Shown here piece by piece: positions 1,601-47,757 of a stretch of 64,000 nucleotides of DNA. Both the position numbers and the translations under genes were made by a program. This DNA is from Styela clava (lineage: Eukaryota). The stretch's first letter is position 1; each line of letters starts with the position of its first letter. A model generated the notes under the pieces. The model saw only the letters and a program-made list of their open reading frames with translations, had not been told where the DNA came from and made no database searches. The stretch is from contig NC_135256.1 in NCBI RefSeq assembly GCF_964204865.1, positions 7,998,001-8,062,000 of the forward strand, read 5' to 3'.

Positions 1601-4600
1601 TTAGGAATCAGATTACCCGAGACGAATTGAAAGAGTTTCTGAAGCTATTTGAATTATCAAAGGACGACCTAGACGGATACCGAATCTGAATCTGTTGACT
1701 TGAGTTTATCGACTAGGCTGAAAGCGATCCAACTAGATCGGAAAGTATGGGAAATGAAAGGGCAGGGCATAAAACTCCCTGCTCACATGATGTATGTTTC
1801 GGATAAGATACCCGTATATTTGAATTATGTTCCTGTAAAGATGTAAAATAAAGTTCTAAAAGAATACTTCGAGGCAAATCATGGCAAAGTCCACCATGTG
1901 GCACACGTCTACGACGGGGACTATAAAACAGGTACCAGATGTTTGATCATGATAAGAGAGGATATTCTGACAAAAAAGCCGGTAAAAAGTTATTGGAGTA
2001 CATGGTTGCACGCTTTTTATAAAGCACTACGGTATCATCCCTACGTGCTTCCATTGTACTAACCCATGACACATCCGTGCATTATGCCCATTGAGATCTA
2101 ACCAAAATAAAACTCAAAGGAATCTGGAATCTGAACAGAAATCATCAACTCAACTAATCAATCAAAATAATCGCGACGTGATTGAAAAGCCCAGTCTACC
2201 GGAACCTGAACAACATGCTGATCAAACCAAAATTGAAAAACAAAATGACGAGACAGCAAAACAGAATGCGGACAATGCTGACGAGTTTGAAAAGAGATTA
2301 CAGGAGTTGGACACCACAACTCCTACTAGCTGGGCAGAAGAGTCAAGGTTTATAACAGCCCAAGACTCGCTTGACTCCATTAGCTATAGCAATAATAAGA
2401 GGTGTAGACAGTCAAACAGTAGCAGCAATACATTACTGAGCAGACCCAGAAAATATGCTAGTGTGACCGACCCACGAGCGGTTTTACAATGCCCGAAATG
2501 TCGCAAAAACATGGGTCTAATGAGTGACCAGAAATAAATCCACTGTATAACATGTAAAATAGATTATAGCCTTTTTTGGACCTGCTGTGACGAGGATGAT
2601 CTCGTCATAATTGAAAACGACAAATTTAAATTCTGGCAACAATCAGATTGCGCAAAATGTAGAAAACGAAGTATACCCACCAAGTACTGCAATACTCTGA
2701 TACCGTATTCAGAATTTATAAAAGCCTAAAACGCATGCCCAAAATGCAAGTCCCCACGCCCCAAATTGAGTTTTTGAAATCAACAATAGTTAAATACAAC
2801 GCCCCTTCTCAATTAGGCCCAAATAACGTTGCGACATATGCTCAATTCAGGAGATACACGCAATCAAACAGGACGAACTAATTTGGTCACAAGAAAGGAA
2901 GTAGGGAAAATCTATTTGTAACTCGTATACGTCTATATCGGCTGGAACAGGAATATTGATATGCAATGAAAGTGTAGAAACGGAAGAGCACAACGCGCAA
3001 GTAGACAGCAAAGGAAGGATCATTGGAATTAATGTAAACGTATCTGGTCACAAAATACACCTCGTCAACGTATATGAATACATCGATAGCGGAAACCTAC
3101 GAGTCCGCCGTGAAACTTAATCGAGGCTCTATCATATTTTGTGAACACCCGAACGCTCATAATAATCGGTGGTGATTTTAACATGGTAATGGACCTGCAA
3201 CTCGATCGTTCAAATTTTTCAAAATTCAGCTACTACGATAGACCAACTATAAACAGAATGAACAATGTGCTAAATGACTTAAATTTGAACTATTACTTTC
3301 GGACGCTGTACGAAAAAAAAAAGAATTCACCTTCCACTACCCGACTGGCTCGTCAAGGCTCGATCGTTTTTATACGAACCATCTCATTATATCAACGTCC
3401 TGTCAGTTTTCAGACCATGACGCTGCTCAGATCGAATTACCCATCACAAACATTAAAACTAACGGCCCGGGAATCTGGAAGAACAACGTTACCCACTACA
3501 AAATGAAACTTTTAAATCAATAGTTAGTGAGAAATGGCAAAAATGGAACACACTCACCTGTATATTTAACACAATGGTGGAACCACGTAAAAAAAAATTA
3601 ACACAACATCGATTCATTTTAGCGAAGCAAAATCAGATACAAAAACTAGAGCACGACTTGAAGATAATCAGGCAAAGAATAATAAACGGGGAGCAACTTT
3701 TCACTAAATATACTCGAACTAAAGCCAAATTATGAAATCTTCATGCAGCGAACCTCTCTACTATCAAAATGCAATTCAAAATTGACGATTTAGAAATTAA
3801 TAAAAACTAACGCCAGCTTCATTTTTAATAAAATTCGAGAGCTAAACAAAACAACACCATCCCAAAAATAGGTTAATTCGGTATAATTCGGACCAAAGAA
3901 GAAGAAAAACAACACATAGGGGGAACATTTTACCAAAAGCTATTCCAAAAAGAATTGGGAGACGACCAAGATCTTTCAAATACTTTTACACCCAGCAATT
4001 CGGACGTGGATACCTCAGACTTAGTACGCAAAATAACAGAGCAGGAACTTAAATACGTGGTTTTCAATTTGGCTTTGAACAAAATGCCTGGACCGGACGG
4101 CATAAGTGCCGAATTTTACTAAACATTCTGGGATATTCTAAAGAAGGACCTACTCATGATCATTAATGAAATTTATCTAGATTCATCCCCGACTGCTGAA
4201 ACAACATATGGAATTGTAACTTTGATATATAAAAATGGCCCAACGGACAATTTAAATAACTATTGACCGATTAGTTTTTTAAACATAGACATTAAAATTT
4301 TAAACAAAATACTTGCAGAAAGGATAGAGAAATTATTACCCCATTTGACCCATTGTCACCAATTATTAAATCCGCCCCACAAAATATCGGACATCAACTT
4401 CATACTAAGAGAAATTTACTCGGACATGAACTACGAAAAATCTGGAGCAATTATATCCATAGCCTTTAGAAAAGCATTCGATTCCATACACCATAACTAC
4501 CTTTTTGAAATTTTGAAAACCCAAAACATGGATCCCGCCTTCGTAAATTACGTAATCAATCTATATGAGGTGTCAACTTCTTCAATTTTAGTAAACGGCC

Positions 4601-8590: not shown

Positions 8591-11500
8591 ATGCGCTGCA
8601 AATGCGGCGGATATCCTGCTACAAGAAACTCATAAAATAGATAGGGAAAAGGTTAACAAATGGTCAAATAATCTTGGTTTCGCTTTCTACCACAACGCCC
8701 CAGATAACCAAGAAACAAACCTCACACACTTTTTTGCGGGCACGGCAATCATGCTGACAAGCAATTTAACGAGCGAAGGCATTGTTTACATAACAATAAT
8801 AAACTACCGTGCACGTGCATTAGACCGACAGTATCTCGGAAGAATTATCGAAATCGTCAATGTATACGGACCCCCCTACTCAAAGACGCCATCACGCGTC
8901 AGATCCCAGCTGGACTTCTATAAGTATCTCACCTCTAGTTTAGCATCTGACGAGCAAACTGTAGATCTTATAATACTTGCAGGTGACTGACGTAGCAGAC
9001 GTCCTTCAGACTAAAAACTTCAAACTTACATAAGGCGAAAAAGCACTAAATAAATATAGGAATCCACTCTATTCAATCCGTATTATGACTACAGCCGATC
9101 TTTACAATAAAAAGAATAAACCAATCCAGGCGCATCAACAGACTATATATCTCAAAAAACACAAATGAGTTCGTTCTCCTACTTTCCAAATTTAATATCC
9201 GACCACCTACACTTACCCGCCTCGATACAAAAGCTAAAAGGGGGCATGGGGATATGGAGGAATAACACTGCCCATTATAAAAACACAGATTTTATCAAAA
9301 TAATAAAAAATCGCTATAACCTCCTCCTCGGACATCTCGAAAGTGCCAATAACTTGTTGGACTGGTGGGACGACGTAAAAGTCCAAAGAAAGAAAGAAGC
9401 GGTTTCCTATGGTATTCGGCAAAAACATCTCGCATCCGCGGAGCAACGGAAAATTGAAGAAGAAATAAGGAAATCCGCACAAGGCACGTCTTCACTCTCC
9501 AAAACCGAACTCAACACCAAAAAACAACGCCTTACATCCTTACTGGCCGAAGGGGTCAAGTTTCAAAAGATAATAGCTAGAGCGAAACCAACAGACGACG
9601 ACGATATCCCGACAAAATTTTTTTTTCAACAAAATTCTCATCCGGGAAAAACAATGTTCCTCAACCGCATACGTCTAGACGGCGCCACTACTACGGATGA
9701 CCCTCAGATAATAATCAATAAAACCCATGACTTCTGTAACAACCTGTGGGGTACCACCAGCGCTACCGAACAAGACGCACAGACTCACTATTTTAATATC
9801 ATGTCTGAGCCATCCCTATCCCCCTCTGATACAGAGGAAATGAGTGGGCTAGTCACCGAAACAGAAATCCTCCGCATAATTCAAAGTTTTGATAACAACG
9901 AATCCCCCGGAGTAGATGGATTGGGTAATGAATTTTACCTGACCTTTTGGAAAACCATAAGAAAACAATTCGTACAACTAATAAACAACGTCTTAGCGTT
10001 TGGACAAATGCCACATAGTTGGAAAATGGCCCGGGTGATCTTGATCCACAAAAAAGGAAGCACCATTGAATTAAAGAATTGGCGGCCCATATCCATTCTG
10101 AACCAGGACTATAAGATTCTAACTAAACTACTATCAAATCGCCTATCCCACAAATTTGGACTCCTAATCCACCCCGTACAAAAATCCACAATACCAGGTA
10201 GACAAATGTCAGAAATACACAGGAACTTAGAAAGTATAACCAGATACTCCCAAATCAACCAAGCCATAGTCACAATACTAACAGTAGATCAGATGGAAGC
10301 TTTTGATATGGTGAACCACGAATTTTTGCATAAACTTCTCGAAAAAATCGGAATCGGAACAAGGCTCTGAAATCTTATAAAAGAACTATACAACAACATA
10401 AAAAGTAGAATTGAAATTAACGGTGCTTTCACCCCTGAAATATGTATAAAAAGAGGAACCCTAAGTATGCTCCTCTATACCCTAAACGCTGAGCCTATTA
10501 CCAGGGCCATACTCAAGAACAAATACATCCGGGGTATAAAACTTGGCAAGAAGAAGGAAAAAATCCAGCAATACGCGGATGACACCAGTTTCATACCAAC
10601 AACATTGTACTCAATTGAGCTGATTTTTAAAGAGTTATCACTTTTCCAACTAGCAACAGGACAATCCCTAAATAAAGACAAGTCACAAATCCTATGCCTA
10701 ACCAAAGATGCTGAAAAGCATCTTGAAGGATCAATTTTCGAAAAATATCGGCGGGAGACGGTCGAAATACTAGGGGTTAATTTTGGCAAAAACGCAGGAA
10801 ACGAAGTCTGGGATAAAAAGATCAGTAAAATAACCCAAATCCTCAAGAACTCTAACTCGCGACACCTCACATGGAGAGGTAAACAAACAATCATACAATC
10901 CCTTGCCCTCCCGCAAACACTTATGGAAGCGAAAACAAGAGCGATACCAACGCAATATCTAAACAAAATTCAAGCCATGTTTTTTTAAATATCTCTGGCA
11001 CCCCGTATACTTTGAGAGCGTCGCCCGAAAAACACTTCTCCTACCAGCAAGAAAGGGCGGAATTGGTATGGTCGATATAAAATTGAAATCATACGCTTGC
11101 CTCTTTCAGAAACTAGTTACCCGACTTAATACAAAAGATCCAGTAGAATTCTGTCACTACGAAGCCCTCTACACATTGGGATAAAAAATAAAGTCTTTCA
11201 ACCCGTCACTATATAATAACTCGGCTCCCCATGCACTCCAAATTGACCAACATTGGCAGCATATTCTTTAATATAAATCACGTCATGAAATTAGCCCCAT
11301 CTGAATGGGAAGGAACATCTCTGAGATTTCTCTATAAAAAACTAAAAGAAAATATCTATGAATGCTCTAGTACAGAGTTGTGACTGGGATAGAATTCATT
11401 TAAGGGATAGGCGAGTGAAGCCGTATTTTTCCAATGTCGAGCGGCAGTCTGCGTATCGAATCAAAAGAGACGGCTTCCTTTTCGGGCATCGGAAATGGAG

Positions 11501-12010: not shown

Positions 12011-12074
12011 CACGGTGGATGTCAGACTGTGTGCGTGTTACACATTTCGCACAGTAAGTACGCGGCGGAAAAAA

Positions 12075-14790
12075 AAACGAAAGATGTCTGCTAAGACGGC
12101 CCGTTGTTCCTTTAAGATCTAGCTGAGGTATTGGAGTTTTGGTTGTATTTAGGCAGTTAAACATTGTCTATTTGAGTCGTGTTGGGAAACTGATATAATT
12201 TTGGACTGAAAACTTGGAGATAACTAACAACATGGGTGACTCAGCAGCGGTCTCCAGTCAAAACACGCAACAGGGAAAACGACCTCGTTTGGTGGTCGCT
12301 GAGGTAAGCGCCGATCTAGATGTGAAACGGTTTTTGAACATATTATCAAACTCGGAGTCTACAAATAAGTACGTTGAACACTTAACCGCTTTGTATGAAC
12401 AATGTCGTCGGCAATGGTTGTTTTCCTTTCCAGTGGTCGGCAACCTTTTTTAAGTGACGGACCGGTAAAGCCTGACCAAAATTTTGGCGGACCACCTTTG
12501 TGTTGGCAATCTTTTCAAAACAAAGGTGATGATATTTATTGCAAAATCTGCATTTGTTTGCTGGGCATTAATTGTTCCCAATTTTTGAGACACGGTCGAG
12601 AAAGATACACGTTACGTGTTTTTTACGTTCAGCCTTCTTTTTTGTAGTTGTCACTATTGAAAACCCGACCTCACATAAGGCAAAAGGTGACAGCGCCCGC
12701 AAACGTCTGGGTATTCATAGAAAATTATAGACCTTTGCTGTCACTTATGGCTATGAATCCATATTGCAAATACAAAGTATTTTTTCTTCGCGATTGATGT
12801 TCCCGGTATATCTACACTCTGAGTTTTGTTAGATACTTTGAGGCGCAGTCACTCGAAAATTGCTTTATTGATGTTTGTTTAGCCATAACTATTGACGTGG
12901 AACTCGTTTGTAAAGTCAGACATGCTGCTCAGATGCGTTGTTTTTGTCTGGTTTGTAAAGGTGTTATTAGGGTTATGGCCGCTTTCATCAGGCCACCTTT
13001 CTGCGGACCGGTAGTAATCTTTCCGCGGACCGGCGATGGGCCGCGGCCCGGTGGTTGCCGATCCCAGCTTTAGGCAATTACATCCAGAAAATGGAAATAT
13101 TTCGAAACGAGACGACTTCTTGAGGAAGAATACAAACATTTTAACATCCGAAAATGTAAACAATCGTGTTTTTTTTTTCGCCAACAAAGCCGCCAACGCG
13201 AGTTAGTAAAGATATGTGCCTGATGAGCAATTAGTTTGGGACATCCTAATTAATTAAAACCGGCTGTGGTAAATTACGCCACATAAACAAACAATTTTAT
13301 CGGAGGACGTCGCTATACAACGGCTACGTAGCCGCGTGAATTGCGGACTTCGACCGTACAAAATTTCCGCCTTTTTTAACCATCAATGGATAGCGTTGCA
13401 AGACATACTTGTCTTCGGAATTATATAACCCCACCTGCTTTAATTGCCTCGAGCAGGGCCATAGCGCAAGAAATTGCACCGCGGCTAAAAGTGGCGACAA
13501 TGCCAGCAAGAAGGTCATATAAAGGCAAACTGTCTTAAATAATAAAACACACCAGAAGTCCATTGAATCATGGCTAAAAATCACCACAGTCACAAAAGCA
13601 CAAAAATAAAATAAACCAGACAAAATTGAAATATCAACCGTTGTGCCCCAAACCCCACAAAACGTCTCTGTGGACGAAGTTTCATCAAAAAGTAACGATA
13701 CAACAGAAATCATCGACGTCGAAAGCAAAGAAACAAAAGATTGGTCATTAAGTCCCGTAATCAACAAAGACCCGCACTCGAGTCCCCCTCCCATTGCACA
13801 AAGAAATCTTCCTCGACCTCCTCTGCGGCCCCACCGACGGCAAAAAAGAAAATGAACTTTACTAACCTGCACGTCTCCTTAACTCGATCCAAACTTCAAA
13901 AACTCATCCCCACTTGATAAAATTAATATCTTTGAATGTAAATGGAATCATGGCCCATCTGGACAAAATCTCACTCACCATCAAGACTCATGACCCCGAC
14001 ATTATGCTAATTCAGGAAGCTCACAGAATAGATACTGACAAAGTTACCAAATGGGCATCTAAACTAGGATATAGGTTTTATCTGAATGCCCCAGATAAAC
14101 TCAAAACCCATCTTAAACACTTCTTCGCATGCACGGGAATATTGCTATCCAACCAACTTGTGAGCAATACCATCACTTACAATATAATAGTAAGATACCG
14201 GGTCTGCTCATTAGACCTGCAATACCAAGAAAAAAATGTAAAAATTATAAATGTATACGGTTCTCCAACACAAGACATAGCCCAAACAGACTTTTACACA
14301 AATCTGGCTACCAGATTAGCGCCCGACAACCTTGAACCCTGACCTCCTCATACTCGCTGGGGATTTCAATGCAGTGACGGATAAAACAGATAAACTACAA
14401 ATTACCTATTTTAAACTGACTGAAGGTGAGAAAATACTATATAAATACATCCAGGATAACAACCTTTTCGATCCATATCTTAACCATTGTCCAAAAAAAC
14501 CATTTTTCCTATTAAAAGGAAGAACCAATTTAGACGCATAGACAGAAGAATATCCATTTTCAAAATGGCCAAATCACAAATCAGATCATTCTCCTATCAC
14601 CCCAATTTAGTATCAGATCACATACATTTCGCCGCCATCGAATTAACCCAATATAAAAGAGTCAAATGGGGAAGGGGCAACTGGAGAAACAGCACAGCCC
14701 ATTACGAGGATCCTGATTTTCTCCAGATGATCATAAACCGATATAAAACCCTTCTCAGAGATCTCGAACGCGCCAACAATATTTTAGTAA
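12075..14790 (+). mobile_element. Tx1-like element, family B: 5' leader, ORF1 (ATG 12232, interrupted by a MITE) and ORF2 endonuclease, 3'-truncated
   Basis: ORF1 start MGDSAAVS..RPRLVVAEVS shared with 42475 and 46917; zinc knuckle CFNCLEQGHSARNC near 13436; ORF2 IKLISLNVNG..IQEAH..INVYG..LAGDFN..SDH. Confidence 0.88.
12431..13067. mobile_element. hAT-type MITE inserted in Tx1 ORF1
   Basis: Imperfect TIRs cagtggtcggcaacc / ggttgccgatcccag with GC-rich subterminal palindromes; ORF1 reads on across the insertion; TSD degraded. Confidence 0.7.
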
Positions 14791-14869
14791 TATACCGAAG
14801 GTATTTGTGCATTGATTATTTATATATATATAAATAATAATCCCTATTCTTGCTTTCTCGTACGTGGCG

Positions 14870-14969
14870 TCGTGTAAATTCCAATTATTCGATTGAATTC
14901 AGTTACACGAGAGTACCGTTGAACAAAAAATGGCTATGAACCAAGCAGACCGAACGAAAGAGCACCTGA
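14870..14969 (+). pseudogene. H3: Histone H3 gene 5' fragment (Inr-like site, 5' UTR, codons 1-13) truncated at a Tx1 5' junction
   Basis: 14930 ATG GCT A(t)GA ACC AAG CAG ACC GAA CGA AAG AGC ACC TGA equals MARTKQTARKSTG with a 1-nt insertion and 2 substitutions; preceded by aaaaa, TCAGTT at 14899 and a possible decayed TATA (tgtaaat) near 14873. Confidence 0.85.
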
Positions 14970-15192
14970 TCGGTCGTTTTCAACAGCTATCACGCCACCT
15001 CGCGGGCATAATACCATGGAAGAAGCTATAAAAAAAACGACAAACCGATCCTACTCATCAGTCACGAATGAGAACCTAGAGAACACCCCCGATAGAAGCT
15101 GCGATATTAGCTTCAAATTTAAAGGAGTATTATCCAAAGAAGAATTAGAGAAATTTATTTCGAATATAAACGTCACTAAAAACGATCTAGAC

Positions 15193-16434
15193 CAGAGTTT
15201 CAAGAACTTTTTCTATCAGCGCCCCCTTAGACGACTTTTTAACTAGCAAACGCCCTCTGACAAGAAAAGTCAAAGCTACTTTATTCTCCATTTATCATTA
15301 GTACCAAGAATGAGCTGACAAAAGCAATAAAAAAACTTTTGACCCGATCTCACACATGAGGATATTTCAATTTGACTCTGTTCCCCAAAAAATAGAACAC
15401 TAAAAAATTAAACATGGGTTTGAATGTATAAACCCAGTGGTAGTGGTGCATTTTTCGCTTCTGGAAATTCAGGGTTATCTAGGAAACGGAAACCAAAAAT
15501 TTCTTAGCTATCTCCAAAATGATTTGATTTTATTTGCGCTTGAACTTCTGTTTGCGTATGATTATACTCAGAAGTTTCGCAAAATTTTCAACCACTCACT
15601 TACTTTTCTGCTGGAGCGCATCTTCTGCTGTCAGGACATGGCAATTAAAGAGTTCAAACGGTGAATACAGAACATTACGTGGTTGTGCCGAGAAAAATCT
15701 GGACATAACTTGAGGGATTGATAGAGGTGACCTGCAGTGGTTCCGGCATGACCCTCCATACATCAAATAAGACGCTTGCTTTCCAGAGAGAAAAGTCAGC
15801 AATGACATCCAGTGGGCACCTTAATTATTGGACTGGAACCTCTCAGATTCTCTGATATGTAGGGTATTCGAAAGAAAATCCTCAAACGATTGGTAAACTC
15901 AAGGCTGCAGAAATAAAATAGAGAAATACCCAAAAAAGAGTGATTTACAATGTTGCAAAAAAAATGCAATTTTTTCTTCAATGACGTGGAGAGCATTTGG
16001 AACATATTCTAGGAACAACATAATTTTTGTGCAAAACGTCCTAGATTTTCTGACACTTTTGGGTACGAACAGAAGTTCAAGTGTAGACAAAATTAAATAG
16101 TTCACCCCATTTCGTAGATTTAATCGAGAAATTGATGGTTCAGTTTTTGGGGATCACGCTGTATAATACTGTTTTTAATATAAATCAGTTAAATATGCTG
16201 CTAAAGCGAGAAATTTCCAACACCGAAATCACAAGCAAACTAGTTTGAACCAAAACATGTGAGTAAATGGCATAAAATATCACATTTCTTGCGATCTCCC
16301 GTTTTGATGTCAGCGCCCCCCAATCGCCCAGTTTGACAGAAAGCGCCCCCCAATTGCCCAAATCGCCATCAGCGCCCCCCAAGTTATTGCAAACGCCCAC
16401 AAAGGGGCGTTTTCGCCCACTTTGGGAACCGCTG
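15193..16434. mobile_element. hAT-type MITE with 8-bp TSD
   Basis: TSD atctagac at 15185-15192 and 16435-16442; imperfect TIRs cagagtttcaagaa / tttgggaaccgctg; subterminal agcgcccccc repeats at 16311-16382. Confidence 0.85.
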
Positions 16435-17149
16435 ATCTAGACGGATATGTATCCTATCCAGATAGAGCAGTGAACTTAAGTCTGGTAAACCGTCTGAGGT
16501 TTTACAACTAGACAGACACATATGGGATTTAAAAAGAAAAGGCATGCGGCTCCCGGTACACTGGCTTTACATGACCGACAATATCCTGGTATACGTGAAT
16601 TACACACCGATAAAAATAAAGAATGAAGTGATACAAGACTACTTCATGAGAAATCATGGCGCGGTAACGTCTATAAATTATGTACTAGATGATGTCATCA
16701 AGACGGGCACGAGACGACTTATAATAGACAGGGAAGACCTGATCAAACGACCAATTAAAAGCTACATTAGAATCCAGAAATGTACAATATATACCAAACA
16801 CCCAGGCATAACTCTTGTGTTTTAATTGTGGAGATACAGGACATCAAAAAGCAGCGTGCCCGCATAGAAAACCATCTGTAGCTAGTTACAACGCCCAACG
16901 AAACCGAACCTGAAATAATCAACGTACCTACGCCCGACAACAAACAGAAATCGCCAAATAAAGAAACTAGACAGCGATCGGAGACCGCCGACTTATCGAT
17001 CTTTCGCATGTTCAATATGTTACTCGACAATTTTGACGGAATACGATTTCAAATGTGGTATTCTCCCAAATTGCAATCTATCCGTTGGCCACATTCTGAA
17101 TAATTTCTCCTGCAGAAACACACAGCAGTATTTCGCCGAAAATATTAAA

Positions 17150-20100
17150 CTATGTGGTTAGGTAATTGGTTGTTATAAACACTGTGTCATGATCCGAATA
17201 ATACGTGTCCACAATATCAACAACAATGCTGTCATCCGTACAATTTCTATTAAAATACATGTGATCAAGCAAAGACCCATAATCTGTGGTCGCGCGATTG
17301 GTGGGAATATATTGTCGGAAACCAAGCTCATTCATTTTTTCCATGATAGAAGATGATCGATTATGGAAAATATTATCATTAAAATCTCCCAAGATGAATG
17401 TTGGAGCTCCTTGTGGTATGAAGGTCATTAATTCAGACAATATGTTAAGAAATTCCAACTGCGGAAAACTCGGTGGTCTGTAAATTAACAACAAAGTGAA
17501 TTCTTTATTCGTGGAAGTTTTCAGTCGAATCATTTTATGCTCAAGCACATTCGAAGATGTTTTTATTTCAACTGGGTTCAGCTTTCGCGAAGCACAGACT
17601 AATAATCCGTGCTTTCCACCATGATTTTGTTCACTGGGTACGTGTTCTCTAAAGGAAACGTAGTCAAATTTGTTAGTGAATTTGTCTATGTTGTGGCGTT
17701 CCGTCAAATATGTTTCTGTGAAACAGCAAATATCAGCATGACGAAAAATTTCACCCTCTGTATAAGAAACTATATCGTACATCTTCTTTAAAAAGTACCT
17801 TATGTTTAAATGACCTATCGTTAACCAATTTGATTTATTTAAATCTGTCAATGTGGGTGGACGTTGGTGTGCTATGGGCATTGTACGCATGTTATTCATC
17901 ACTTCAGAACACTCAGAACTATATCGGATAGTACAGGGATCAAAATCAGACAGATTCAAATTTTCCAACTTTCTAACCCGGGACAAAGCGACATAAACTT
18001 GCCCACAGCCAAATTTCTTTACCTTTGTGTTGACGACAATCTTATTTAAAGTAATACCTTGACATTTGTGAATTGTGACGGCCCAACCAAGCGTCAACGG
18101 AAACTGGTATCGGGAAACTTGTGCTCCTTTGCCATATGCCTTTTCGAATTTGGCTTCCCTGCGTGTTATCGGCACGAGGCGGGGGTGTTGCCTTTTCCAT
18201 CTACTCTTAGCCATAGCTTTTCGTCCAACATTATCGTTGTCAAACTTAATCAAAATGCTGATTACAAATTCTTTGTCATTTTTTGCAATATATTGAACGG
18301 TACCCATTACTCCGTTCACCAAACCGTCACTCGTGTCTATATTATAAAGCAACATGACCCTACACCCAACAGCAATTTCCAAGACGGTGTGCAAACCGCC
18401 GGTTTTGCATCTTTTTAACTTTAAACCAGATGCACGCAAACTAATTAGAGACAACCCCTCCCTTTTGTCATCTATGGCCGGTATCACAATTTTTTCGGGC
18501 CCACTTTGAATCAACTTATTCAGTTTGAATAAATTCCAGTTATCTACGTCGTTGTTGTAAGCAAAAACGTGCAATGCCTCCTCTGGATAGTTGAGATCGA
18601 AAAGATGAATCTCCCTTGTGCGCAGTGTATCTATGTCGGCTCGTGTTTGATTTCCCAATCGAATCCGACATAACAATTCTGCAAAATTTCTATCGTTTTT
18701 TTGGCGCATAATTTCATCTAATTCGTGCAAGTGGAAATAATCATTCCAAAGAGACCGACCCAGGCGCATAGTTTCATCAGAAACAGGACAAAATATTGGA
18801 GGCTGACAGACTGGAGGCAATTGGAACAAATCACCGACTGCTAAAACAGAAACGTTTCCAAATGGAGCCGCATTTCCCTTGATCACTTGCAGGCGTTTGT
18901 GAATGTTTAAAAGCATGTCTGAACTTACCATGGAGATTTCATCGATAATTAATACACGTAATCTGCCGAGATGAGATCGCAAAGTATTCAGTTTTTCGAA
19001 GGATATGCCGTCGTGTCCACTGCTAGCTTTCCTATTTGTTAACAGTAGTGCAGAATGTATAGTTATACCATCTATGTTGAATGCAGCAACGCCTGTTGGA
19101 GCACAAAGGAGGCAAGTTACATCATTCGGATCGACAGTTCTTGAAAGAGCGAAATATCTTCTTGTATCGTGCTGAATCAATTTTATCACATGTGATTTCC
19201 CTACTCCACCAGGACCACTTAAGAAAATTCTATATGGTTCAACAGAACCGTTTTGTTTAATTGCAATAACGGCATCCTTGCACCACTTCCTGTGATGGAA
19301 TACTATAGCCCTTTGCTTCTCATTCAAGCAGCGTATCATATTACAATATTCAGATGTAGATAATACATTTCTGTTCTTTTCGATTTCGTATCTCGCACCT
19401 ATGTCACTTTTGGGAACGGCAACACGTTTGACACTCTCAATGATCGCTGAGTTGGCAGCAAGATCCTCTCTTATCATGGTGGTGTAAGGTGTATCACCTT
19501 CCGATTTATCTTGTTGATTTGAAAGGTCACTTTCCATGCCAAGATCGCCCCACAAATGAAGAGGAGGACCGCTCACTGAATTTTTGTGAACAGCTGAATC
19601 AACTAACTCCACATTGTTGCAATACCGTGATTCCACAGCAGACAATTTGTCTTGTATTTCCAAATAATAAGATGAATATGTTGGATGGTCCGCCAACAGG
19701 TCGCGCTCCTCTGAACGCCACGGGAGGTATAACATCAATTTGGCACGGCAAAAATTGTTGAAATCAGTTTCCTTGTTATGTTTTCGAAAACGAATTATAC
19801 ATTCTCTTCTTCTTTTACTCATTTTCCCAAGGCCGCGTCTCAGTACAATATGCTGGGGTAAATCATAATGAAGATCCTTATTCCCGTGATCGTCGTGCAA
19901 CAAATCTTTTACGCTGTCATCGACGTGTTTGTCATTTTTTCGATAACTCACTGCATAATTTGCAACGAAAGTTGCTAAACACACATTGTCCAAGCTACTC
20001 GGCCTCGCCGAGTATTGGTCAAGTATATTTTTTTGAAATATGTCACTATCTTCGTCTTCCAGTTTCTCCAGTTCTTTTTTTGATTTTAAGATACACTGTC

Positions 20101-23038
20101 GTTCTGCAACAGGATCAGTGTTTATGTAAATAACAGATCTACTCATTTTTTTCATTGGAATGGATAAGATACGATAACATGCTTCCTGTGCACTTAGTTC
20201 TCGATTATTTAAAAAGACAGAGCTTATTCGCCTAAGCATATTTTTTATATCAAAATCCTTATATTCTTTGCATGCATGTTTTAATAGCAACCCCATTCCC
20301 TGTCCACTTTTCATCATATACGATGCGACATACGTGACACATGCATAAGGATCAACAACATACTGGATATCCATATTGGCTTGCCATGCCTTTAATATCA
20401 CGGGGTTATATGCGTTGATGAAGCACTTCGCCGGCTTTCTGGCTAGGATAACAGTGTTGCCTTTTTGTGACATACAAAGTGCCTGCCGATATTGTTGATT
20501 ATCAATATCAATATTTTGTAGTAAATCGTCCATACTTACATCCGAACTGGTGTCTCGGTACGACGACGATAGCGTATCACGGACTTTTTTTAAAACAATT
20601 TTAGACTGGGCCATTAATTCACTCTCATCCTCCTCGACTTCTTTTGCAATTATTACTTTTTCACTCGGTGGTTTTGGGTAATTAAATCTACATCCACCAC
20701 TTTTCCTGCAATAGGAAGAATGACTGTGTGTCTGTAAATCCTGAACGAGGGCTTTCAATGGGAGGTCGTCAACAGGAAATGAACAAGCAACGTGCTTGCT
20801 AATGAACGCGCACACCTCTTCATCAGTTTGAATGCCCAACTTTGGGGCCTTGTCAACCCAAAGCAACATATGGGCATGAGGGGAACCTGTGGCTTGAAAT
20901 TCTATCCGAATCCCATAATCAGTAATATGACCCAATGGCTGTGCCGGGGACAATAGTACATCTTTGTACAAGCATTCTAAACGATAGTGAAAGTGTCTAA
21001 CTGCGGTAACTGGGTTGGACCTTAACCACATAGACCTCTGCTCAAAGGAAAGCTTAGCTACGTCATCATCCGTTAAAATGGACCCGTACTGTCTAGCAAT
21101 GGATGAAATTAAGTCTGGCCATCGCATGTCTGCGGCACTTAGTGTGAAGAAAAATGTAGGAATTCCAATCTGACGAATCATATCCAGTACATCATAAAAT
21201 ACGCCTTGGAAATAAGCGGGCGAACCTCGAATATTCTGCAGTATTCTGAAAGCTTTATCAGTTTTAATCATGTTATTTATACTATCCGAATTTCGAATAA
21301 ATCCAGCAGTTATCTCGTTATTTCCGCATTCGTGATTTACTCGACGAAACACGAAGTGGTTGACGTCACCCTGTATCTGTTTGCTTTCAATTGCATACTG
21401 GGCGGATAATAAGTATTCAATATTTCGTGCGAATCTTCCGTCAGCATCTAAAAGTCTTTGATTGAAATACTTACGCGGAGTGATTGGAACAACACGATCA
21501 GTACTGAAACCATTATTTCCATCCGGATATAATGATGGATATGCTAGTTGTTCGAATTTATCATCGGCCAATAATGGAATCGGTTTTTCATCTTCAGCGG
21601 GAGCCATACTGATAATTTTATTACTGATGTCATCATTGACAACCGTTGATTCATACTGTAAACCTCGGACACTTGTTGATTGTTTTAAATCAATCTCATC
21701 CCCTTTATTTTCAATTACTGCGCTGCTTATTTCGGGGGAATTACTTTTTGTAACCTTACATCTTTGAATTTTGTGACTGATATCCATAAGTTCCATTTTT
21801 GAATAACTGTCTGTGTTCGAATCTGAATATTGTGATTCAGGTTTAAATACAACGTAGTGCTGTTGTCCAATTAAACCTAAATGAAATTCATTTTTATATG
21901 AATATCTGGATCGCACAACAATATCATCTCCGTTAGTTTTGTGCACAACAATTTTCAGTGCGAACATATTGGTGATGGCTTGCAATGCTATATGCTCGCC
22001 CCACTGTGAACCATTTTCCAACTTATTTAAGTAATTTTGCCACATTAGATTATGACGAGACACCGGATTATTAACTTGGGAAATGTGGTAATCGTAATCT
22101 GACGGATGCTCCATGTCAGAGCAATAAAGTTCTTCATATCCGACATTGGAACATACAAAATCTCTATAAGCATCTGCGTGTTCAAGCATATATTTGGATA
22201 GTTCACGTCGTATTTCGACTGGGGTTTGCAGCGATATGCCAAGACGTACTAAGTGATGGCAGACGGCGTTAAACATACAATTTCCATCTGATGGAACGTT
22301 TATCATTTTCATTCCCTGCGTTTGCGAAGTGTTCCATAAATTGCGACTCGAAACGCTACCCGTACATGTCGGCGAATACGAAACATTTGTGGATGATGAG
22401 TTTGTTGAACTACGCTTTTTCTCGCTATCAGAGGAATGGCGAGAAGCACACGTTGTTTGAATATCTGGTGCTACGGGAATGTTTTTGACCGATTCATTAG
22501 AATTTAACTGCATGTCATCGTTGTCGTCGATAAACATAGCATTCCACAATTCCTCGTCATTTTTTGAAGCATGTTCAATATAATTGTCGTTGATAATGAT
22601 ATCTTTATACAAGAAATTGTTAATTTTCAACCATTTCAGTGCACATATGACTTTATCAATTCGCACATAATCATACATGTAATGCGATGTGTAGGACAAT
22701 TTACGTTTTAACTTCAATGGAATCAACTGACATTCAGAGGGCAACCGAGAAAATTGATCACATACGACGTGTAACTTAGAGGGAACATTGACTGCTGGAC
22801 CGTGAATTCCTCGTTGCTTGCCACAAGGAAGTCCAAGAATTTTCATAAAAGGGATTCGCTGTGAAATCAAACGAAGTTCTAGCACATTCAGATCTTTTAA
22901 AGCAGCTGGTTGGTCCGCTATCGTCATATTATTCGCTTTAGATTGGCAAGGTATTTTTCCATTCTTTAACGATATGTGACATGTTCTGCAAATGTACACG
23001 TTTCCATCTGGTGACTTAATTTCGATGATAGAACACAT
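17150..23038 (-). CDS. Helentron Rep/Hel transposase: DUF6570-like region, OTU cysteine protease, HUH Rep, PIF1 helicase, C-terminal APE endonuclease (1962 aa)
   Basis: OTU VPSDGNCMF..WGEH..HY; Rep PTFFFTLS, EFQATGSPHAH, YVASYMMK; helicase GPGGVGKS, IIDEISM, GDLFQLPPV, TIHKCQGITL, YVALSR; APE HLNIR, FTETYL, YRPPS, GDFND, LDH, SDHD. Confidence 0.96.
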   Translation of the reverse strand: MCSIIEIKSPDGNVYICRTCHISLKNGKIPCQSKANNMTIADQPAALKDLNVLELRLISQRIPFMKILGLPCGKQRGIHGPAVNVPSKLHVVCDQFSRLPSECQLIPLKLKRKLSYTSHYMYDYVRIDKVICALKWLKINNFLYKDIIINDNYIEHASKNDEELWNAMFIDDNDDMQLNSNESVKNIPVAPDIQTTCASRHSSDSEKKRSSTNSSSTNVSYSPTCTGSVSSRNLWNTSQTQGMKMINVPSDGNCMFNAVCHHLVRLGISLQTPVEIRRELSKYMLEHADAYRDFVCSNVGYEELYCSDMEHPSDYDYHISQVNNPVSRHNLMWQNYLNKLENGSQWGEHIALQAITNMFALKIVVHKTNGDDIVVRSRYSYKNEFHLGLIGQQHYVVFKPESQYSDSNTDSYSKMELMDISHKIQRCKVTKSNSPEISSAVIENKGDEIDLKQSTSVRGLQYESTVVNDDISNKIISMAPAEDEKPIPLLADDKFEQLAYPSLYPDGNNGFSTDRVVPITPRKYFNQRLLDADGRFARNIEYLLSAQYAIESKQIQGDVNHFVFRRVNHECGNNEITAGFIRNSDSINNMIKTDKAFRILQNIRGSPAYFQGVFYDVLDMIRQIGIPTFFFTLSAADMRWPDLISSIARQYGSILTDDDVAKLSFEQRSMWLRSNPVTAVRHFHYRLECLYKDVLLSPAQPLGHITDYGIRIEFQATGSPHAHMLLWVDKAPKLGIQTDEEVCAFISKHVACSFPVDDLPLKALVQDLQTHSHSSYCRKSGGCRFNYPKPPSEKVIIAKEVEEDESELMAQSKIVLKKVRDTLSSSYRDTSSDVSMDDLLQNIDIDNQQYRQALCMSQKGNTVILARKPAKCFINAYNPVILKAWQANMDIQYVVDPYACVTYVASYMMKSGQGMGLLLKHACKEYKDFDIKNMLRRISSVFLNNRELSAQEACYRILSIPMKKMSRSVIYINTDPVAERQCILKSKKELEKLEDEDSDIFQKNILDQYSARPSSLDNVCLATFVANYAVSYRKNDKHVDDSVKDLLHDDHGNKDLHYDLPQHIVLRRGLGKMSKRRRECIIRFRKHNKETDFNNFCRAKLMLYLPWRSEERDLLADHPTYSSYYLEIQDKLSAVESRYCNNVELVDSAVHKNSVSGPPLHLWGDLGMESDLSNQQDKSEGDTPYTTMIREDLAANSAIIESVKRVAVPKSDIGARYEIEKNRNVLSTSEYCNMIRCLNEKQRAIVFHHRKWCKDAVIAIKQNGSVEPYRIFLSGPGGVGKSHVIKLIQHDTRRYFALSRTVDPNDVTCLLCAPTGVAAFNIDGITIHSALLLTNRKASSGHDGISFEKLNTLRSHLGRLRVLIIDEISMVSSDMLLNIHKRLQVIKGNAAPFGNVSVLAVGDLFQLPPVCQPPIFCPVSDETMRLGRSLWNDYFHLHELDEIMRQKNDRNFAELLCRIRLGNQTRADIDTLRTREIHLFDLNYPEEALHVFAYNNDVDNWNLFKLNKLIQSGPEKIVIPAIDDKREGLSLISLRASGLKLKRCKTGGLHTVLEIAVGCRVMLLYNIDTSDGLVNGVMGTVQYIAKNDKEFVISILIKFDNDNVGRKAMAKSRWKRQHPRLVPITRREAKFEKAYGKGAQVSRYQFPLTLGWAVTIHKCQGITLNKIVVNTKVKKFGCGQVYVALSRVRKLENLNLSDFDPCTIRYSSECSEVMNNMRTMPIAHQRPPTLTDLNKSNWLTIGHLNIRYFLKKMYDIVSYTEGEIFRHADICCFTETYLTERHNIDKFTNKFDYVSFREHVPSEQNHGGKHGLLVCASRKLNPVEIKTSSNVLEHKMIRLKTSTNKEFTLLLIYRPPSFPQLEFLNILSELMTFIPQGAPTFILGDFNDNIFHNRSSSIMEKMNELGFRQYIPTNRATTDYGSLLDHMYFNRNCTDDSIVVDIVDTYYSDHDTVFITTNYLTT

Positions 23039-24007
23039 TCAATTATTTTCATGTTTACGTTCTTGTAAGCAGTTTTATTGAGTTTCACTACACTAACTTT
23101 GTACTGTAAACGGTGGCATGAAGTGCAGGGAAAATCTGCGCTACTGGAAATATGGTGATGAAATTTCTGTATATATGTAAAGTTTGTGTTATTTTCTCCA
23201 TGTTGACGAACGTCCGTGGCGCGTTTTTTTATTCGATTTAGACGAGCAGTTTTTTCATGTATAGTTTCCTTCGTTCGTACCTCGGCTGTCCGTTTTTTGT
23301 CTTGTTGTAGACGGCCAGATTTTTCTGGAGCCGTTTCGCGCGCACAAACCTCGGCTGTTCGTTTTTTTTTTTGTTGGAGACGGACAGATCTTTCCGGAGC
23401 TGTTTCGCGCGCACGAACCTCGGCTGTTCGTTTTTTGTTTTGTTGGAGACGGACAGATCTTTCCGGAGCCGTTTCGCGCGCACAAACCTCGGCCGTCCGT
23501 TTTTTGTCTTGTTGGAGACGGACAGATTTTTCCGGAGCCGTTCCGTGCGCACGAACCTCGGCCGTCCGTTTTTTCTTCTGTTGGAGACGGACAGATCTTT
23601 CCGGAGCCGTTTCGCGCGCACGAACCGCGGCCGTCTGTTTTTTGTCTTGTTCTCGACGATATATTTTTTTTTTGTGTGGTCTTCCATTTTCGCACCTCCG
23701 CCATATGTTTTTAAGCCTTATCAAGTCGACATAAGGTATCCATCTCAGTTTCATTTGGGTGCTTTTGCCGAGATTTGTTAACAATACCAGATAGCATTTC
23801 TCCGGAAACCAGTGATATCGTGTCACCAATACCATAGCGAGCACTCGCAAGCCACTGTGACAGAGAACGTTCAGAAGCAGCACTATCACTATCCTTGTCA
23901 TTGAAAGATGTGGGACTAACACTGTCTTTCCAAGTTTGTTCGGCCTTACTTTTAGCCTTTCTCTCCCTCTTTTTAACATCTAAACTTTTTTTCTTCATCT
24001 TGGGCAT
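23039..24007 (-). pseudogene. Disrupted N-terminal part of the Helentron transposase (basic N-terminus, STPR-like repeats, first half of Zn finger)
   Basis: ATG 24007 MPKMKKK; in-frame TAA at 23711-23713; frame change in the T-run near 23665-23673; CTSC half of a Zn finger out of frame with the CRTC half in the 1962-aa ORF. Confidence 0.75.
23215..23720 (-). repeat. 69-bp coding tandem repeat (23-aa unit ETAPERSVRLQQxKKRTAEVRAR), STPR-like
   Basis: Unit spacing of 69 nt (ctcggctgt at 23281 and 23350); about 5 near-identical units plus degenerate flanking units; 23-aa period and ETxxERxxRL pattern resemble STPR repeats. Confidence 0.85.
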
Positions 24008-25249
24008 CGCGTTATATCAAAATATATAGTAAACAACAGCCAACTCCCCACGTTGTCGTCGAAATACTACTCGAGGAAATACTTTTATGAATAAATTTGC
24101 AAATCCGAACTGAACAGTTTTCAGCCAGTAGCCAATTTACTACCGAAAATGGCTAACGCCAACTATCCTATAGTATATATTGTGTCAAATAAAACGGCGC
24201 TAACCGCAATTGAGACGGCTATTCAACCACAGCCTAGCGATATTTTGGTAAAGAATTAGATTTGGTTTCAGTCAATAGCCTATTTGCCACCGGCAATGGC
24301 GACCGTCGACTATCCCATAGCTCTATAGTTTGTGTCAAACGCAAAGATAGTATACGACGGATGGTTCCGATTGTATCCGAATGGTCACACACACACAATC
24401 GTATGGAAAAGGGGATCTCCCAAAACAGAAACTGCGGCTTTGATAGCATCGCAGACAGGGCATTGTTACGCACACAATCCCTTTCGATTTCTTCTCTCTG
24501 AACCTCTAGCAACACCGTGTGTCCCATCACTAATTAATTAATAACTCGCTGAATATACGACATAATCAACCCAAAATCAATAGGCTTCTGGTCCGAGATA
24601 TGATGTATGCACATGCAATTTGGAGCAGATTCAACCTCGCATTCGCGAGATATCGCGGTCATCTAACAGACACACAGACATACACACAGACAAATACCTA
24701 TCAATATACTTACCGATCTTAATAATTAACCATCGACATGCCGCACCTAATATGGAAATAAACCTAAATCAAACGAAACCTGGACTGATCCTGTACACAC
24801 GATCGAGTGCCCCAATTGCGACAAATTCATTTCATTAGTCAATGAACAATGCGACGAGTACTGCGTAAATTGTGAAGAGGATTTCTACCTATTATCATCC
24901 TTTTGTGACCCTCCGACCCTGGTGATGGCCAGAAAGAAGGACACAAAATGTTGGGAAAAATTCCTTTGTATTAAATGCAACGAACTGTCAATACCGGATT
25001 AAATGCTGCTACTCCTGTATACCATTAACAAAAATAGGAAAGAATAATTCGATTTGTCCCCATTGCAACCAAAAATACCCCAATCCAATACCGCCATCCG
25101 AATACCTCAAACCCGTATAATTCGTAATATAATAACACTTTAAACTTACACCGCCTATTCTACCCTGTTGTTTTCGTCATTTCCATTCATAATGAACATA
25201 CTAATAATTTCAAATTTGCATATTCCATCATACCTTAATTTTACCATGT

Positions 25250-42215: not shown

Positions 42216-42299
42216 GCCTTCACAACAAACAGACGCGGACGACGCTAATTGCAAACCTTACGCTAGCTGTTGTGACCAGACTATGCGCGTTTAGCGATT

Positions 42300-42345
42300 A
42301 TCATTATCAAAAAACGCAAACATGTCTGGAAGAGGTAAAGGAGGA
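42300..42345 (+). pseudogene. Histone H4 or H2A gene 5' fragment (TCATT start, A-rich 5' UTR, codons MSGRGKGG) at a Tx1 5' junction
   Basis: caaac ATG TCT GGA AGA GGT AAA GGA GGA at 42322-42345 is an exact match to the shared H4 / invertebrate H2A N-terminus; similarity stops where the Tx1 leader begins. Confidence 0.8.
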
Positions 42346-44799: not shown

Positions 44800-46790
44800 G
44801 CCGCGTTCGATCTTAATTCCATTGTCGAGTTTAATGTTTCGTCACAGCCGAGCCGGACGTATTAGGTTAGACCTACAAAACCAAATAACGTGGTTGAATC
44901 AGCAAGGACTAGTGATAGCTTTTTGAAAGCCACGCAATATGAAATAAAAGCAGGCCAAACGAATATTAGATTCTACCCTCCATCAAAACCACCAACCAGA
45001 ATCAGTATCAGGAACGTTCCTGACTAAACAAGACCCTAGCCCGTAATGTATGTTCTAAGCAAAGTCAACTGCGGCAAACAATGAATGTATAGCCGCTTGG
45101 ATGGAAGACTTTGAGCGAGAACACTACCCTATTTCTAACAATTGACAGCGCAAAGGTAAAATCATATCTACCAAGCGAGCTCTATAACCCAATTTGTAAA
45201 AGCTGTTTAAACCCGGAAAAACAATTTAGCAAACTGTGACAATCAAACCCGATATAGGTTATGTAAATGTGTAGGCCACATTCTAGCAAACTGCCCACGA
45301 AGGTGATTTCAATGCTGTGACGGACGAAACAGATTTCAACCAGACAAAAACCTCTAACTTACCACAGCCCAAACAAACCGATCTTCACAATAAAAAGAAT
45401 GAACCGATCCAGACGCATCGACAGGCCATACATCTTAAAACGCGCAGCAACACAAATTAGATCATTTTCCCAATTTAAAATCCGACCACCTGCGCTTTCC
45501 CGTCATCAAGATGACTTAATATATAAAGCTAAAAATGGGGGTGGAGCATCTGGAGAAATAACACCGCTCACTACAAAAACCCAGAACTTGTTAAAATAAT
45601 AAAAAATCACTATAACCTCCTTCACGGACATCTCGAAAGTGCCAATAACTTGTTAGACTGGTGGGACGACGCAAAGATCCAAATAAAGAAAGAACCGATC
45701 TCCTATGGGATTAGCCAAAAACAGCTCGCAGCCGCGGCACAACGGGAAATTGAAGAGCAAATAAGAAAATCCGCTCAAGGTACGTCTCGCTTCTCCTCGC
45801 GACACTTAACAAGGAGAGGCAAACAAACAAATACTATCTCTTGCCCTTCCCTCAACACTCATGGAATCGAAAACAATAGTGATACCAACGCGATATCTCA
45901 ACAAAATCCAAGCCATCTTCTTTAAGTACATCTGGCACCCCGAATACTTTACGAGTGTCGCTCGTAAAATATTGCTCCTACCGACAAGAAAGGGCGGAAT
46001 TTGTTTGGTCGACATCAAATTGAAATCCCATGCATGCCTCTTTCAAAAACTAGTCATCTTACTCAGTACAAGCAACCAAGTCGAATTCGAGCACTACGAA
46101 GCTCTTTACACATTGGGGTACAAAATAGTCTTTCAACCCGTCAGTCTATTTTAACTCGGCCACCCACGCTCTCCGTTGGCCACATATTCGTAACATAAGT
46201 CATGTCATAAAATTAGGACTTTCCGAATGGGAAGGAACAACTGTGAGGTTTCCCTACAAAGTAAATACTTACGAATGCTGTAGCAAAGATAATTGCGATT
46301 AGGGTAGAACTCACCTAACGGACAGGCGAATAAAGCCGTATTTTTTCAATCCCGAGCGGCAGGCTGCATATCAAATTAAAAGAGACGGTTTCCTTTTCAG
46401 TCACCTAAAATGGAGGTTCGGACACAACACCGCATTTACTACAAAATTGCGCTAGACACTAAACAGTCAAAACAGTTACGCAGCAAATTGGGACTTAGAA
46501 AACCTGCACCAAGAAGTACTACCTGGATTAGCTCAATATATGAATAACTTCAATTACACATACGAATCGATCTAGACCGTCGAACTAAAATCAAATTGCA
46601 AATCACTACTTCCACGAAATATACTTGCAAACTAGCCGCATATATGACGGCACCCCCTGTCCCCGATAAATGGGAGCATTCCATAAAAAATACCATCTAG
46701 ATCCCTAACAGAAATGATGAATCGAAAGCTAATGTAACACTGATCCGAGACAAGAGTATATTTTCTGATCCGTAGATAGAAAAAAAAACG
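44800..46790 (+). mobile_element. Heavily deleted family B element (ORF1 piece, endonuclease piece, ORF2 C-terminus, 3' end with A-run)
   Basis: Colinear with 8990-9500 and 10850-12010 with the RT core deleted; shared 3' motif atccc(t)aac.gaaatgatgaatcg..agct. Confidence 0.82.
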
Positions 46791-47757
46791 AAAGACATGT
46801 CTCGAACAGGTGTTCGCCGTTCGAAGAATTAGCTACATTAGTTGAGTGTTTGATTGTATTAAGTAAAGTCCTACTCTGTATATATTCTGTGGAACATATT
46901 AACTTGGAGATAAACAATGGATTACTCCGCCGCAGTATACGGTCAGAACAAGCTACAAGTAAAGAGACCACTCTCGGTGGTTGCTGAGTTGAGTAAAGAT
47001 ATAATTATTACCATGTTTATTAGGATACTTACTAACTCTGCATCCACGAGAGACTACATAGAAGAACTAACCGCTTTGAGTATTATCGTTTCGACAACTA
47101 GCTGAACATAATATCAACAAGTCTAAATGGGACGTGTTTTTGATTTCTGCCGCCTACGATACCACCGACGCGCGTGAGCATTAAGGAGGTCCCGGACGAA
47201 ATCAGACGGCGGAAAAATAAATTATAACCAAACTCTACCATCGAGGAACGATGTTATGTAGGCTAATGAATACATAGCGGCCTGGCTTTCCGACTTCGAC
47301 CATGTCAAATTTCCGTCTTTCCTGGACATAGACGGCGCGCGATATAAGACGTATTTGCCGACAGAACTTTACACTCTCAAGTGCATTAATTGTCTAGAAT
47401 CAGGACACTCGGCTCGTAACTGCAATGACTTTGAAGCGATGCCGCGTGTGCGAGAGCCGCATAAGCTTCAAATTGCCCCGAAAGGAAAACAATAGCCCCA
47501 ACAGTTAATAAGATCTGAGAACAAGCCACAAACAAACACCAAATAAGAGCAAAGATATCTCCTTAAAAAACGCCAGTAGTTATCTCGCCGAATAAGAGTG
47601 CCACACAAAATGTCGGAGACACCGGAACCATCTCGAGGAGCAACAACGAATGTGAACTCATTGACGTTAAAAGCAAAGAGAACAATGACTAGTAACTCAG
47701 CCCTGACATAAGTGAAGCGTCTTTTCGCCTGAGTCCACCGCTCCCGGCAGTACAACG

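Follow-up and report, generated by a model that had tools for sequence, protein, structure and literature searches.

We analyzed a 64,000-nt stretch of Styela clava DNA (NC_135256.1, here contig C8, positions 7,998,001 to 8,062,000; hereafter the window), in which a short histone H3-like sequence precedes ORF1 of an L1/Tx1-type LINE, designated family A. The features of this locus, in window coordinates, are as follows.

14838..14898 (+), upstream flank of the copy; not the H3 promoter
14899..14930 (+), H3-derived head, part 1: the H3 initiator TCAGTT (14899-14904) and the A-rich H3 5'UTR
14931..14966 (+), H3-derived head, part 2: H3 codons 1-12, with a 1-nt insertion at 14938 and two substitutions
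14967..15015 (+), element-specific 5' leader; its first triplet, TGA (14967-14969), closes the H3 reading frame once the 1-nt insertion is discounted
15016..15192 (+), N-terminal part of ORF1, with its ATG at 15016-15018, 46 nt after the TGA
15193..16442 (strand not assigned), later insertion of a short non-autonomous DNA element of 1.25 kb, following the target copy of GATCTAGAC at 15184-15192; the part given here ends with the second copy at 16434-16442
16443..17040 (+), ORF1 continued: an RRM-like part (16544-16822) and a CCHC knuckle (16818-16865); the frame is broken by decay
17041..24700 (-), later insertion of a Helitron/Helentron-type element (approximate bounds), with an intact 1962-aa ORF at 17150-23038
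24757..24996 (+), probable continuation of the family A copy after the Helitron

The short DNA element, flanked by the 9-bp direct repeat GATCTAGAC, has more than 40 copies at 82-90% identity spread over the genome, and the family A copy on contig C13 is uninterrupted at this point. The C13 copy is instead interrupted by an element encoding a long ORF that looks like a hAT/ZBED-type transposase (positions 1900-3249 of the excised C13 locus). The 1962-aa ORF gave Pfam hits to DUF6570, OTU, Helitron_like_N, PIF1 and a C-terminal apurinic-type endonuclease (Exo_endo_phos). The probable continuation at 24757-24996 was colinear by tblastx with the related element at window 2439-2678. Aligning the 3' ends of old family-A-like copies in the window gave no definable terminus.

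The H3-derived head of the window copy

To locate the histone genes, we performed a Pfam Histone search of the whole assembly. The window lies beyond a large tandem histone array at C8:7.29-7.84 Mb, about 160 kb from the last intact unit, and H3 fragments occur as close as 7.964 Mb. The repeat unit is 5,755 bp, with a 5,822-bp variant, and the gene order is H1(+), H4(-), H3(+), H2B(-), H2A(+).

We then compared the window with an H3 gene of this genome, read in an excised histone locus (L033). Window 14896-14966 aligned to L033 1441-1518, comprising the H3 initiator, 5'UTR and codons 1-12, at 82.3% identity over 79 columns (E 4.9e-15). Thus, the similarity covers the H3 5'UTR as well as the peptide, and the TCAGTT described as Inr-like in the initial annotation is H3's own initiator. 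In the H3 gene, the A of TCAGTT lies 31 nt after the start of a TATA-like CATATAG. The coding part differs by exactly three changes: GCC>GCT, a 1-nt T insertion at 14938, and GCA>GAA. The initial annotation counted 13 H3 codons; there are 12, and the thirteenth triplet is the element's TGA. CDS nt 5-36 matched 28/32 ungapped. This was the only window position reaching 21/32 on either strand, five shuffles gave none, and no other H3-derived segment was found in the window. All four core histone leaders in L033 (H3, H4, H2A and H2B) contain an ACAAAAAA-type A-run just before the ATG.

The window copy is not inside an H3 gene, as there is no promoter upstream and no H3 remainder in the window. 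The 100 nt upstream of TCAGTT scored 14 in local alignment to the H4-H3 intergenic/promoter region, against a shuffle mean of 14.7 +/- 2.2 (p 0.73), while the leader scored 89 in the same test. A resemblance upstream of the head (GTAC...GTCG) was not above chance. The only other genomic match to this 5' end is on C13, where two copies are 95% identical including their flank and represent one duplicated locus. In a four-way alignment, H3, the window and C13 become alike at TCAGTT; H3 drops out after GAGCAC(C), while the window and C13 stay alike. Therefore, the H3 piece is part of the retrotransposed unit in these copies. The window and C13 heads share GCT for GCC, which shows that the head was inherited within that subfamily rather than re-acquired each time.

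Related elements in H3 genes of the tandem array

A BLAST search with window 14870-15184 identified places in the array where the H3 leader continues into family-A-like sequence. These heads stand 5820-5822 bp (once 5755 bp) after the preceding H3, which is the unit period, indicating that the interrupted H3 genes keep their normal place in the repeat. The junctions were read from short pattern matches of 35 nt or fewer together with search coordinates, and the following types were distinguished.

Class 1: 5' junction after H3 CDS nt 35, then TCAGTT; H3 resumes at nt 12, after ...AATAAAAAT; 24-bp duplication (nt 12-35); 6.6-7.3 kb; four array sites, C8:7939781(-) and C18:8643602(-)
Class 2: 5' junction after nt 31, then TCCTTTAAGT; H3 resumes at nt 5; 27-bp duplication (nt 5-31); about 6.3 kb; six sites
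Class 2, 5'-truncated: 5' junction after nt 27 (7342926); H3 resumes at nt 5 (7344650); 23-bp duplication (nt 5-27); about 1.7 kb; one site, an independent event
Other: 5' junction after nt 31, then different sequence; 3' junction not found; C8:7906728(-)

H3 resumed at nt 5 at six places, including the independent 5'-truncated copy, and at nt 12 at three places. No other 3' junction types were found with the patterns tested, some of which were uninformative because the excluded base was A and the element tail is A-rich. In one occupied unit, a 200-N assembly gap (C8:7520192-7520391) leaves the 3' side of a class-2 copy unassembled. A precise 3' junction with a variable 5' junction is the usual signature of site-specific LINEs (PMC4640811). 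The Pfam search listed about 70 uninterrupted array-type H3 genes, and twelve interrupted ones were found in and beside the array; both counts are lower bounds. About 15% of the assembled H3 genes (roughly 12 of about 82) are thus interrupted, which bears on histone gene dosage and on how the array is homogenised. However, several array copies are probably duplicates made by unit amplification, and we count about five independent H3 insertions.

To examine the coding content between the junctions, we performed a six-frame search with the ORF1 piece of the window copy. ORF1 homologues were located about 360-400 nt after each head, with 69% identity and 429-aa open frames in class 1, and 46% identity and 513-aa open frames in class 2. 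At the DNA level, the N-terminal ORF1 part of the window copy was 80% identical to class-1 array copies over query positions 219-287. A search with an RT piece from a related window copy placed RT homologues about 3 kb further on, in ORF2 open frames of 716-1150 aa in class-1 array copies and 1173-1291 aa in class 2. These therefore appear to be full-length autonomous LINEs. An RT-bearing ORF of a neighbouring Tx1-like copy in the window (family B, 9165-10367) matched human L1 ORF2p best among solved structures (E 7e-27). A search of the Atlas gave only generic RVT_1 clusters and was uninformative for clade placement. In a public protein library, the nearest ORF1 relatives outside this genome (P0001 and P0002) are 43-45% identical and are gene models that fuse ORF1 (RRM plus CCHC) to an endonuclease/RT part.

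Origin of the H3 head and alternative explanations

The initial annotation inferred that family A is specific for the 5' end of histone H3 genes and may be transcribed from the H3 promoter. This inference is supported for the lineage, in sister subfamilies rather than in copies identical to that of the window, by recurrent 5' junctions at H3 codons 9-12 (after CDS nt 27, 31, 35 or 36) and by 3' junctions where H3 resumes near its start. The initial annotation had listed a head travelling as part of the element as a refuting outcome. This is the case in the window/C13 subfamily, but it does not refute the inference here, because the in-array members of the lineage show true H3 insertion.

We consider it likely that family A belongs to a lineage of autonomous L1/Tx1-type LINEs that insert into the first 36 nt of the H3 coding sequence. 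We infer that the endonuclease nicks the antisense strand at nt 4/5 or 11/12 to prime reverse transcription, and that the sense strand is cut about 25 nt downstream. Transcription from the H3 promoter is supported indirectly and inferred from DNA only. The C18 class-1 copy matches present-day H3 wherever its head was tested, and is preceded by unrelated sequence ending in GACAAAAAA rather than the promoter. Together with the window and C13, this makes three loci with unrelated flanks whose head begins at the same TCAGTT. The simplest reading is retrotransposition of RNAs that started at the H3 cap site of an H3-resident element and carried the 5'UTR plus 12 codons, although the class-1 body itself begins with TCAGTT, so the elements may also have their own initiator. 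In all three lineages, the H3 frame is closed within 1-3 codons of the junction, by TGA in the window (discounting its 1-nt insertion), TAG after two further codons in class 1 and TAA after two in class 2. This would leave a 12-14-codon upstream ORF ahead of ORF1. The window copy is best read as an old, decayed copy that kept the H3 head on insertion into a non-H3 site and was later split by a DNA transposon and a Helitron. Its 3' end is lost in nested insertions, and its own insertion site therefore says nothing about specificity.

Alternatively, the H3-derived 70 nt may be a fixed 5'UTR captured once by a window/C13 subfamily that inserts without H3 preference, with only its cousins (classes 1 and 2) being H3-specific. 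The unrelated flanks, the shared derived changes in the head, and the absence of a window-type junction in the array and of a second H3 segment in the window are consistent with this. We regard it as unlikely, as the head ends at nt 36, within 1-5 nt of the array junctions of the cousins, ORF1 is 69% identical to class 1, and the young C18 class-1 copy shows the same head-bearing form arising from an H3-resident family; however, only three old loci are available, which is too few to judge preference. An in-place insertion into an eroded part of the histone array, with the promoter decayed or replaced, is very doubtful. The window lies 34 kb from the last H3 fragment and is a nest of histone-headed Tx1 copies, but identity drops from 82% to background exactly at TCAGTT, the same boundary is seen at C13 and C18 on other contigs, and neutral decay would not stop at the cap site. 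Least likely is a one-off chimera formed by template switching of the reverse transcriptase from the element RNA to an H3 mRNA, as in U6-L1 chimeras. Such switching onto abundant small RNAs is documented for L1 and discussed for Tx1-related SINEs (PMC4494074). However, the switch point would be arbitrary, yet it coincides with the genomic insertion site of the relatives and lies one base from the class-1 junction. In addition, heads occur in three lineages and the array copies have true target-site duplications.

Comparison with known systems and other histone-headed elements

Keno, Mutsu, Dewa and other target-specific Tx1-clade LINEs (Kojima and Fujiwara 2004, cited in PMC4494074 and PMC4640811) insert at one fixed site of a tandemly repeated multicopy gene, with a precise 3' junction and a variable 5' junction. 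The present elements share this behavior, an RT that is L1-like wherever it was tested, and an ORF1 with an RRM-like part and a CCHC knuckle. They differ in that the target is a protein-coding, Pol II-transcribed histone gene, hit inside its first 12 codons, rather than an snRNA, 5S or tRNA gene or a microsatellite, and in that the duplication is 23-27 bp. Like R1 and R2 of rDNA, they occupy a fraction of the units of a tandem array and appear to depend on the target's promoter; co-transcribed upstream target sequence can help form the 5' junction (Eickbush 2000 and Fujimoto 2004, cited in PMC4494074). R2 uses a restriction-like endonuclease and removes the upstream rRNA with a ribozyme, whereas here the upstream H3 part, which is seen in retrocopies, is inferred to stay on the RNA as a translatable mini-ORF under a Pol II host promoter. 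SINEU elements, with a Tx1-clade tail, also have a 5' head derived from a host gene (PMC4494074), but their head comes from an snRNA gene; here the headed element is an autonomous LINE and the head comes from an mRNA 5' end. In L1 5' transduction, a copy likewise starts at a host transcription start upstream of a resident element and carries host sequence along. Here, the piece inferred to be transduced is always the same one, because the resident elements always sit in the same gene at the same site.

The Tx1 and target-specificity papers list only RNA genes, repeats and transposons as targets, and no LINE reported to target histone genes was found in full-text searches, which did not cover Repbase or subscription journals. 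A lineage living in histone genes extends the strategy of living in redundant genes to a Pol II protein-coding family. It would link element expression to S-phase and the germline through the histone promoter, and the immediate stop and short upstream ORF would provide a ready-made solution for translating a LINE from a hijacked mRNA start. The headed retrocopies would also give a DNA-only read-out of the H3 cap site, and an endonuclease with a defined 25-30 bp target in a conserved gene would be of practical interest for targeted insertion tools.

Other core histone genes showed similar associations. In the window, a second Tx1-like family carries heads from the H4 gene (5'UTR plus 8 codons; 42285-42345) or the H2A gene (leader plus start codons; 46783-46811 and about 12060-12090). 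Two of these sit at head-to-tail junctions with a preceding element, and the region upstream of the H4 head shows weak promoter-like similarity. In the array, a roughly 7-kb LINE with 510-aa and 1150-aa open frames (ORF1 at C8:7543742 and RT at C8:7546636) lies in the same orientation as H2B. Its A/T-rich 3' end abuts H2B at CDS nt 22, about codons 7-8 (C8:7549744-7550403), where H2B resumes with AAGAAAATGTCAAGC after ...AATATT. Copies are also present at C8:7619832(-) and C8:7735091(-); the 5' junction was not found. It is somewhat more likely than not that a clade of autonomous L1/Tx1-type LINEs has radiated over the core histone genes of this animal, each inserting within the first dozen or so codons, riding the S-phase Pol II histone promoter and turning the histone start into a mini upstream ORF. 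These would be the first site-specific LINEs specialised on protein-coding genes.

Clusters of more distant Tx1-like RT hits (32-38% identity), with 1150-1180-aa open frames at spacings of roughly 6-8 kb, were detected at C4:23.30-23.47 Mb, C8:4.24-4.52 Mb, C5:7.92-7.95 Mb and C6:19.5-19.6 Mb, and may be other array-dwelling, target-specific families.
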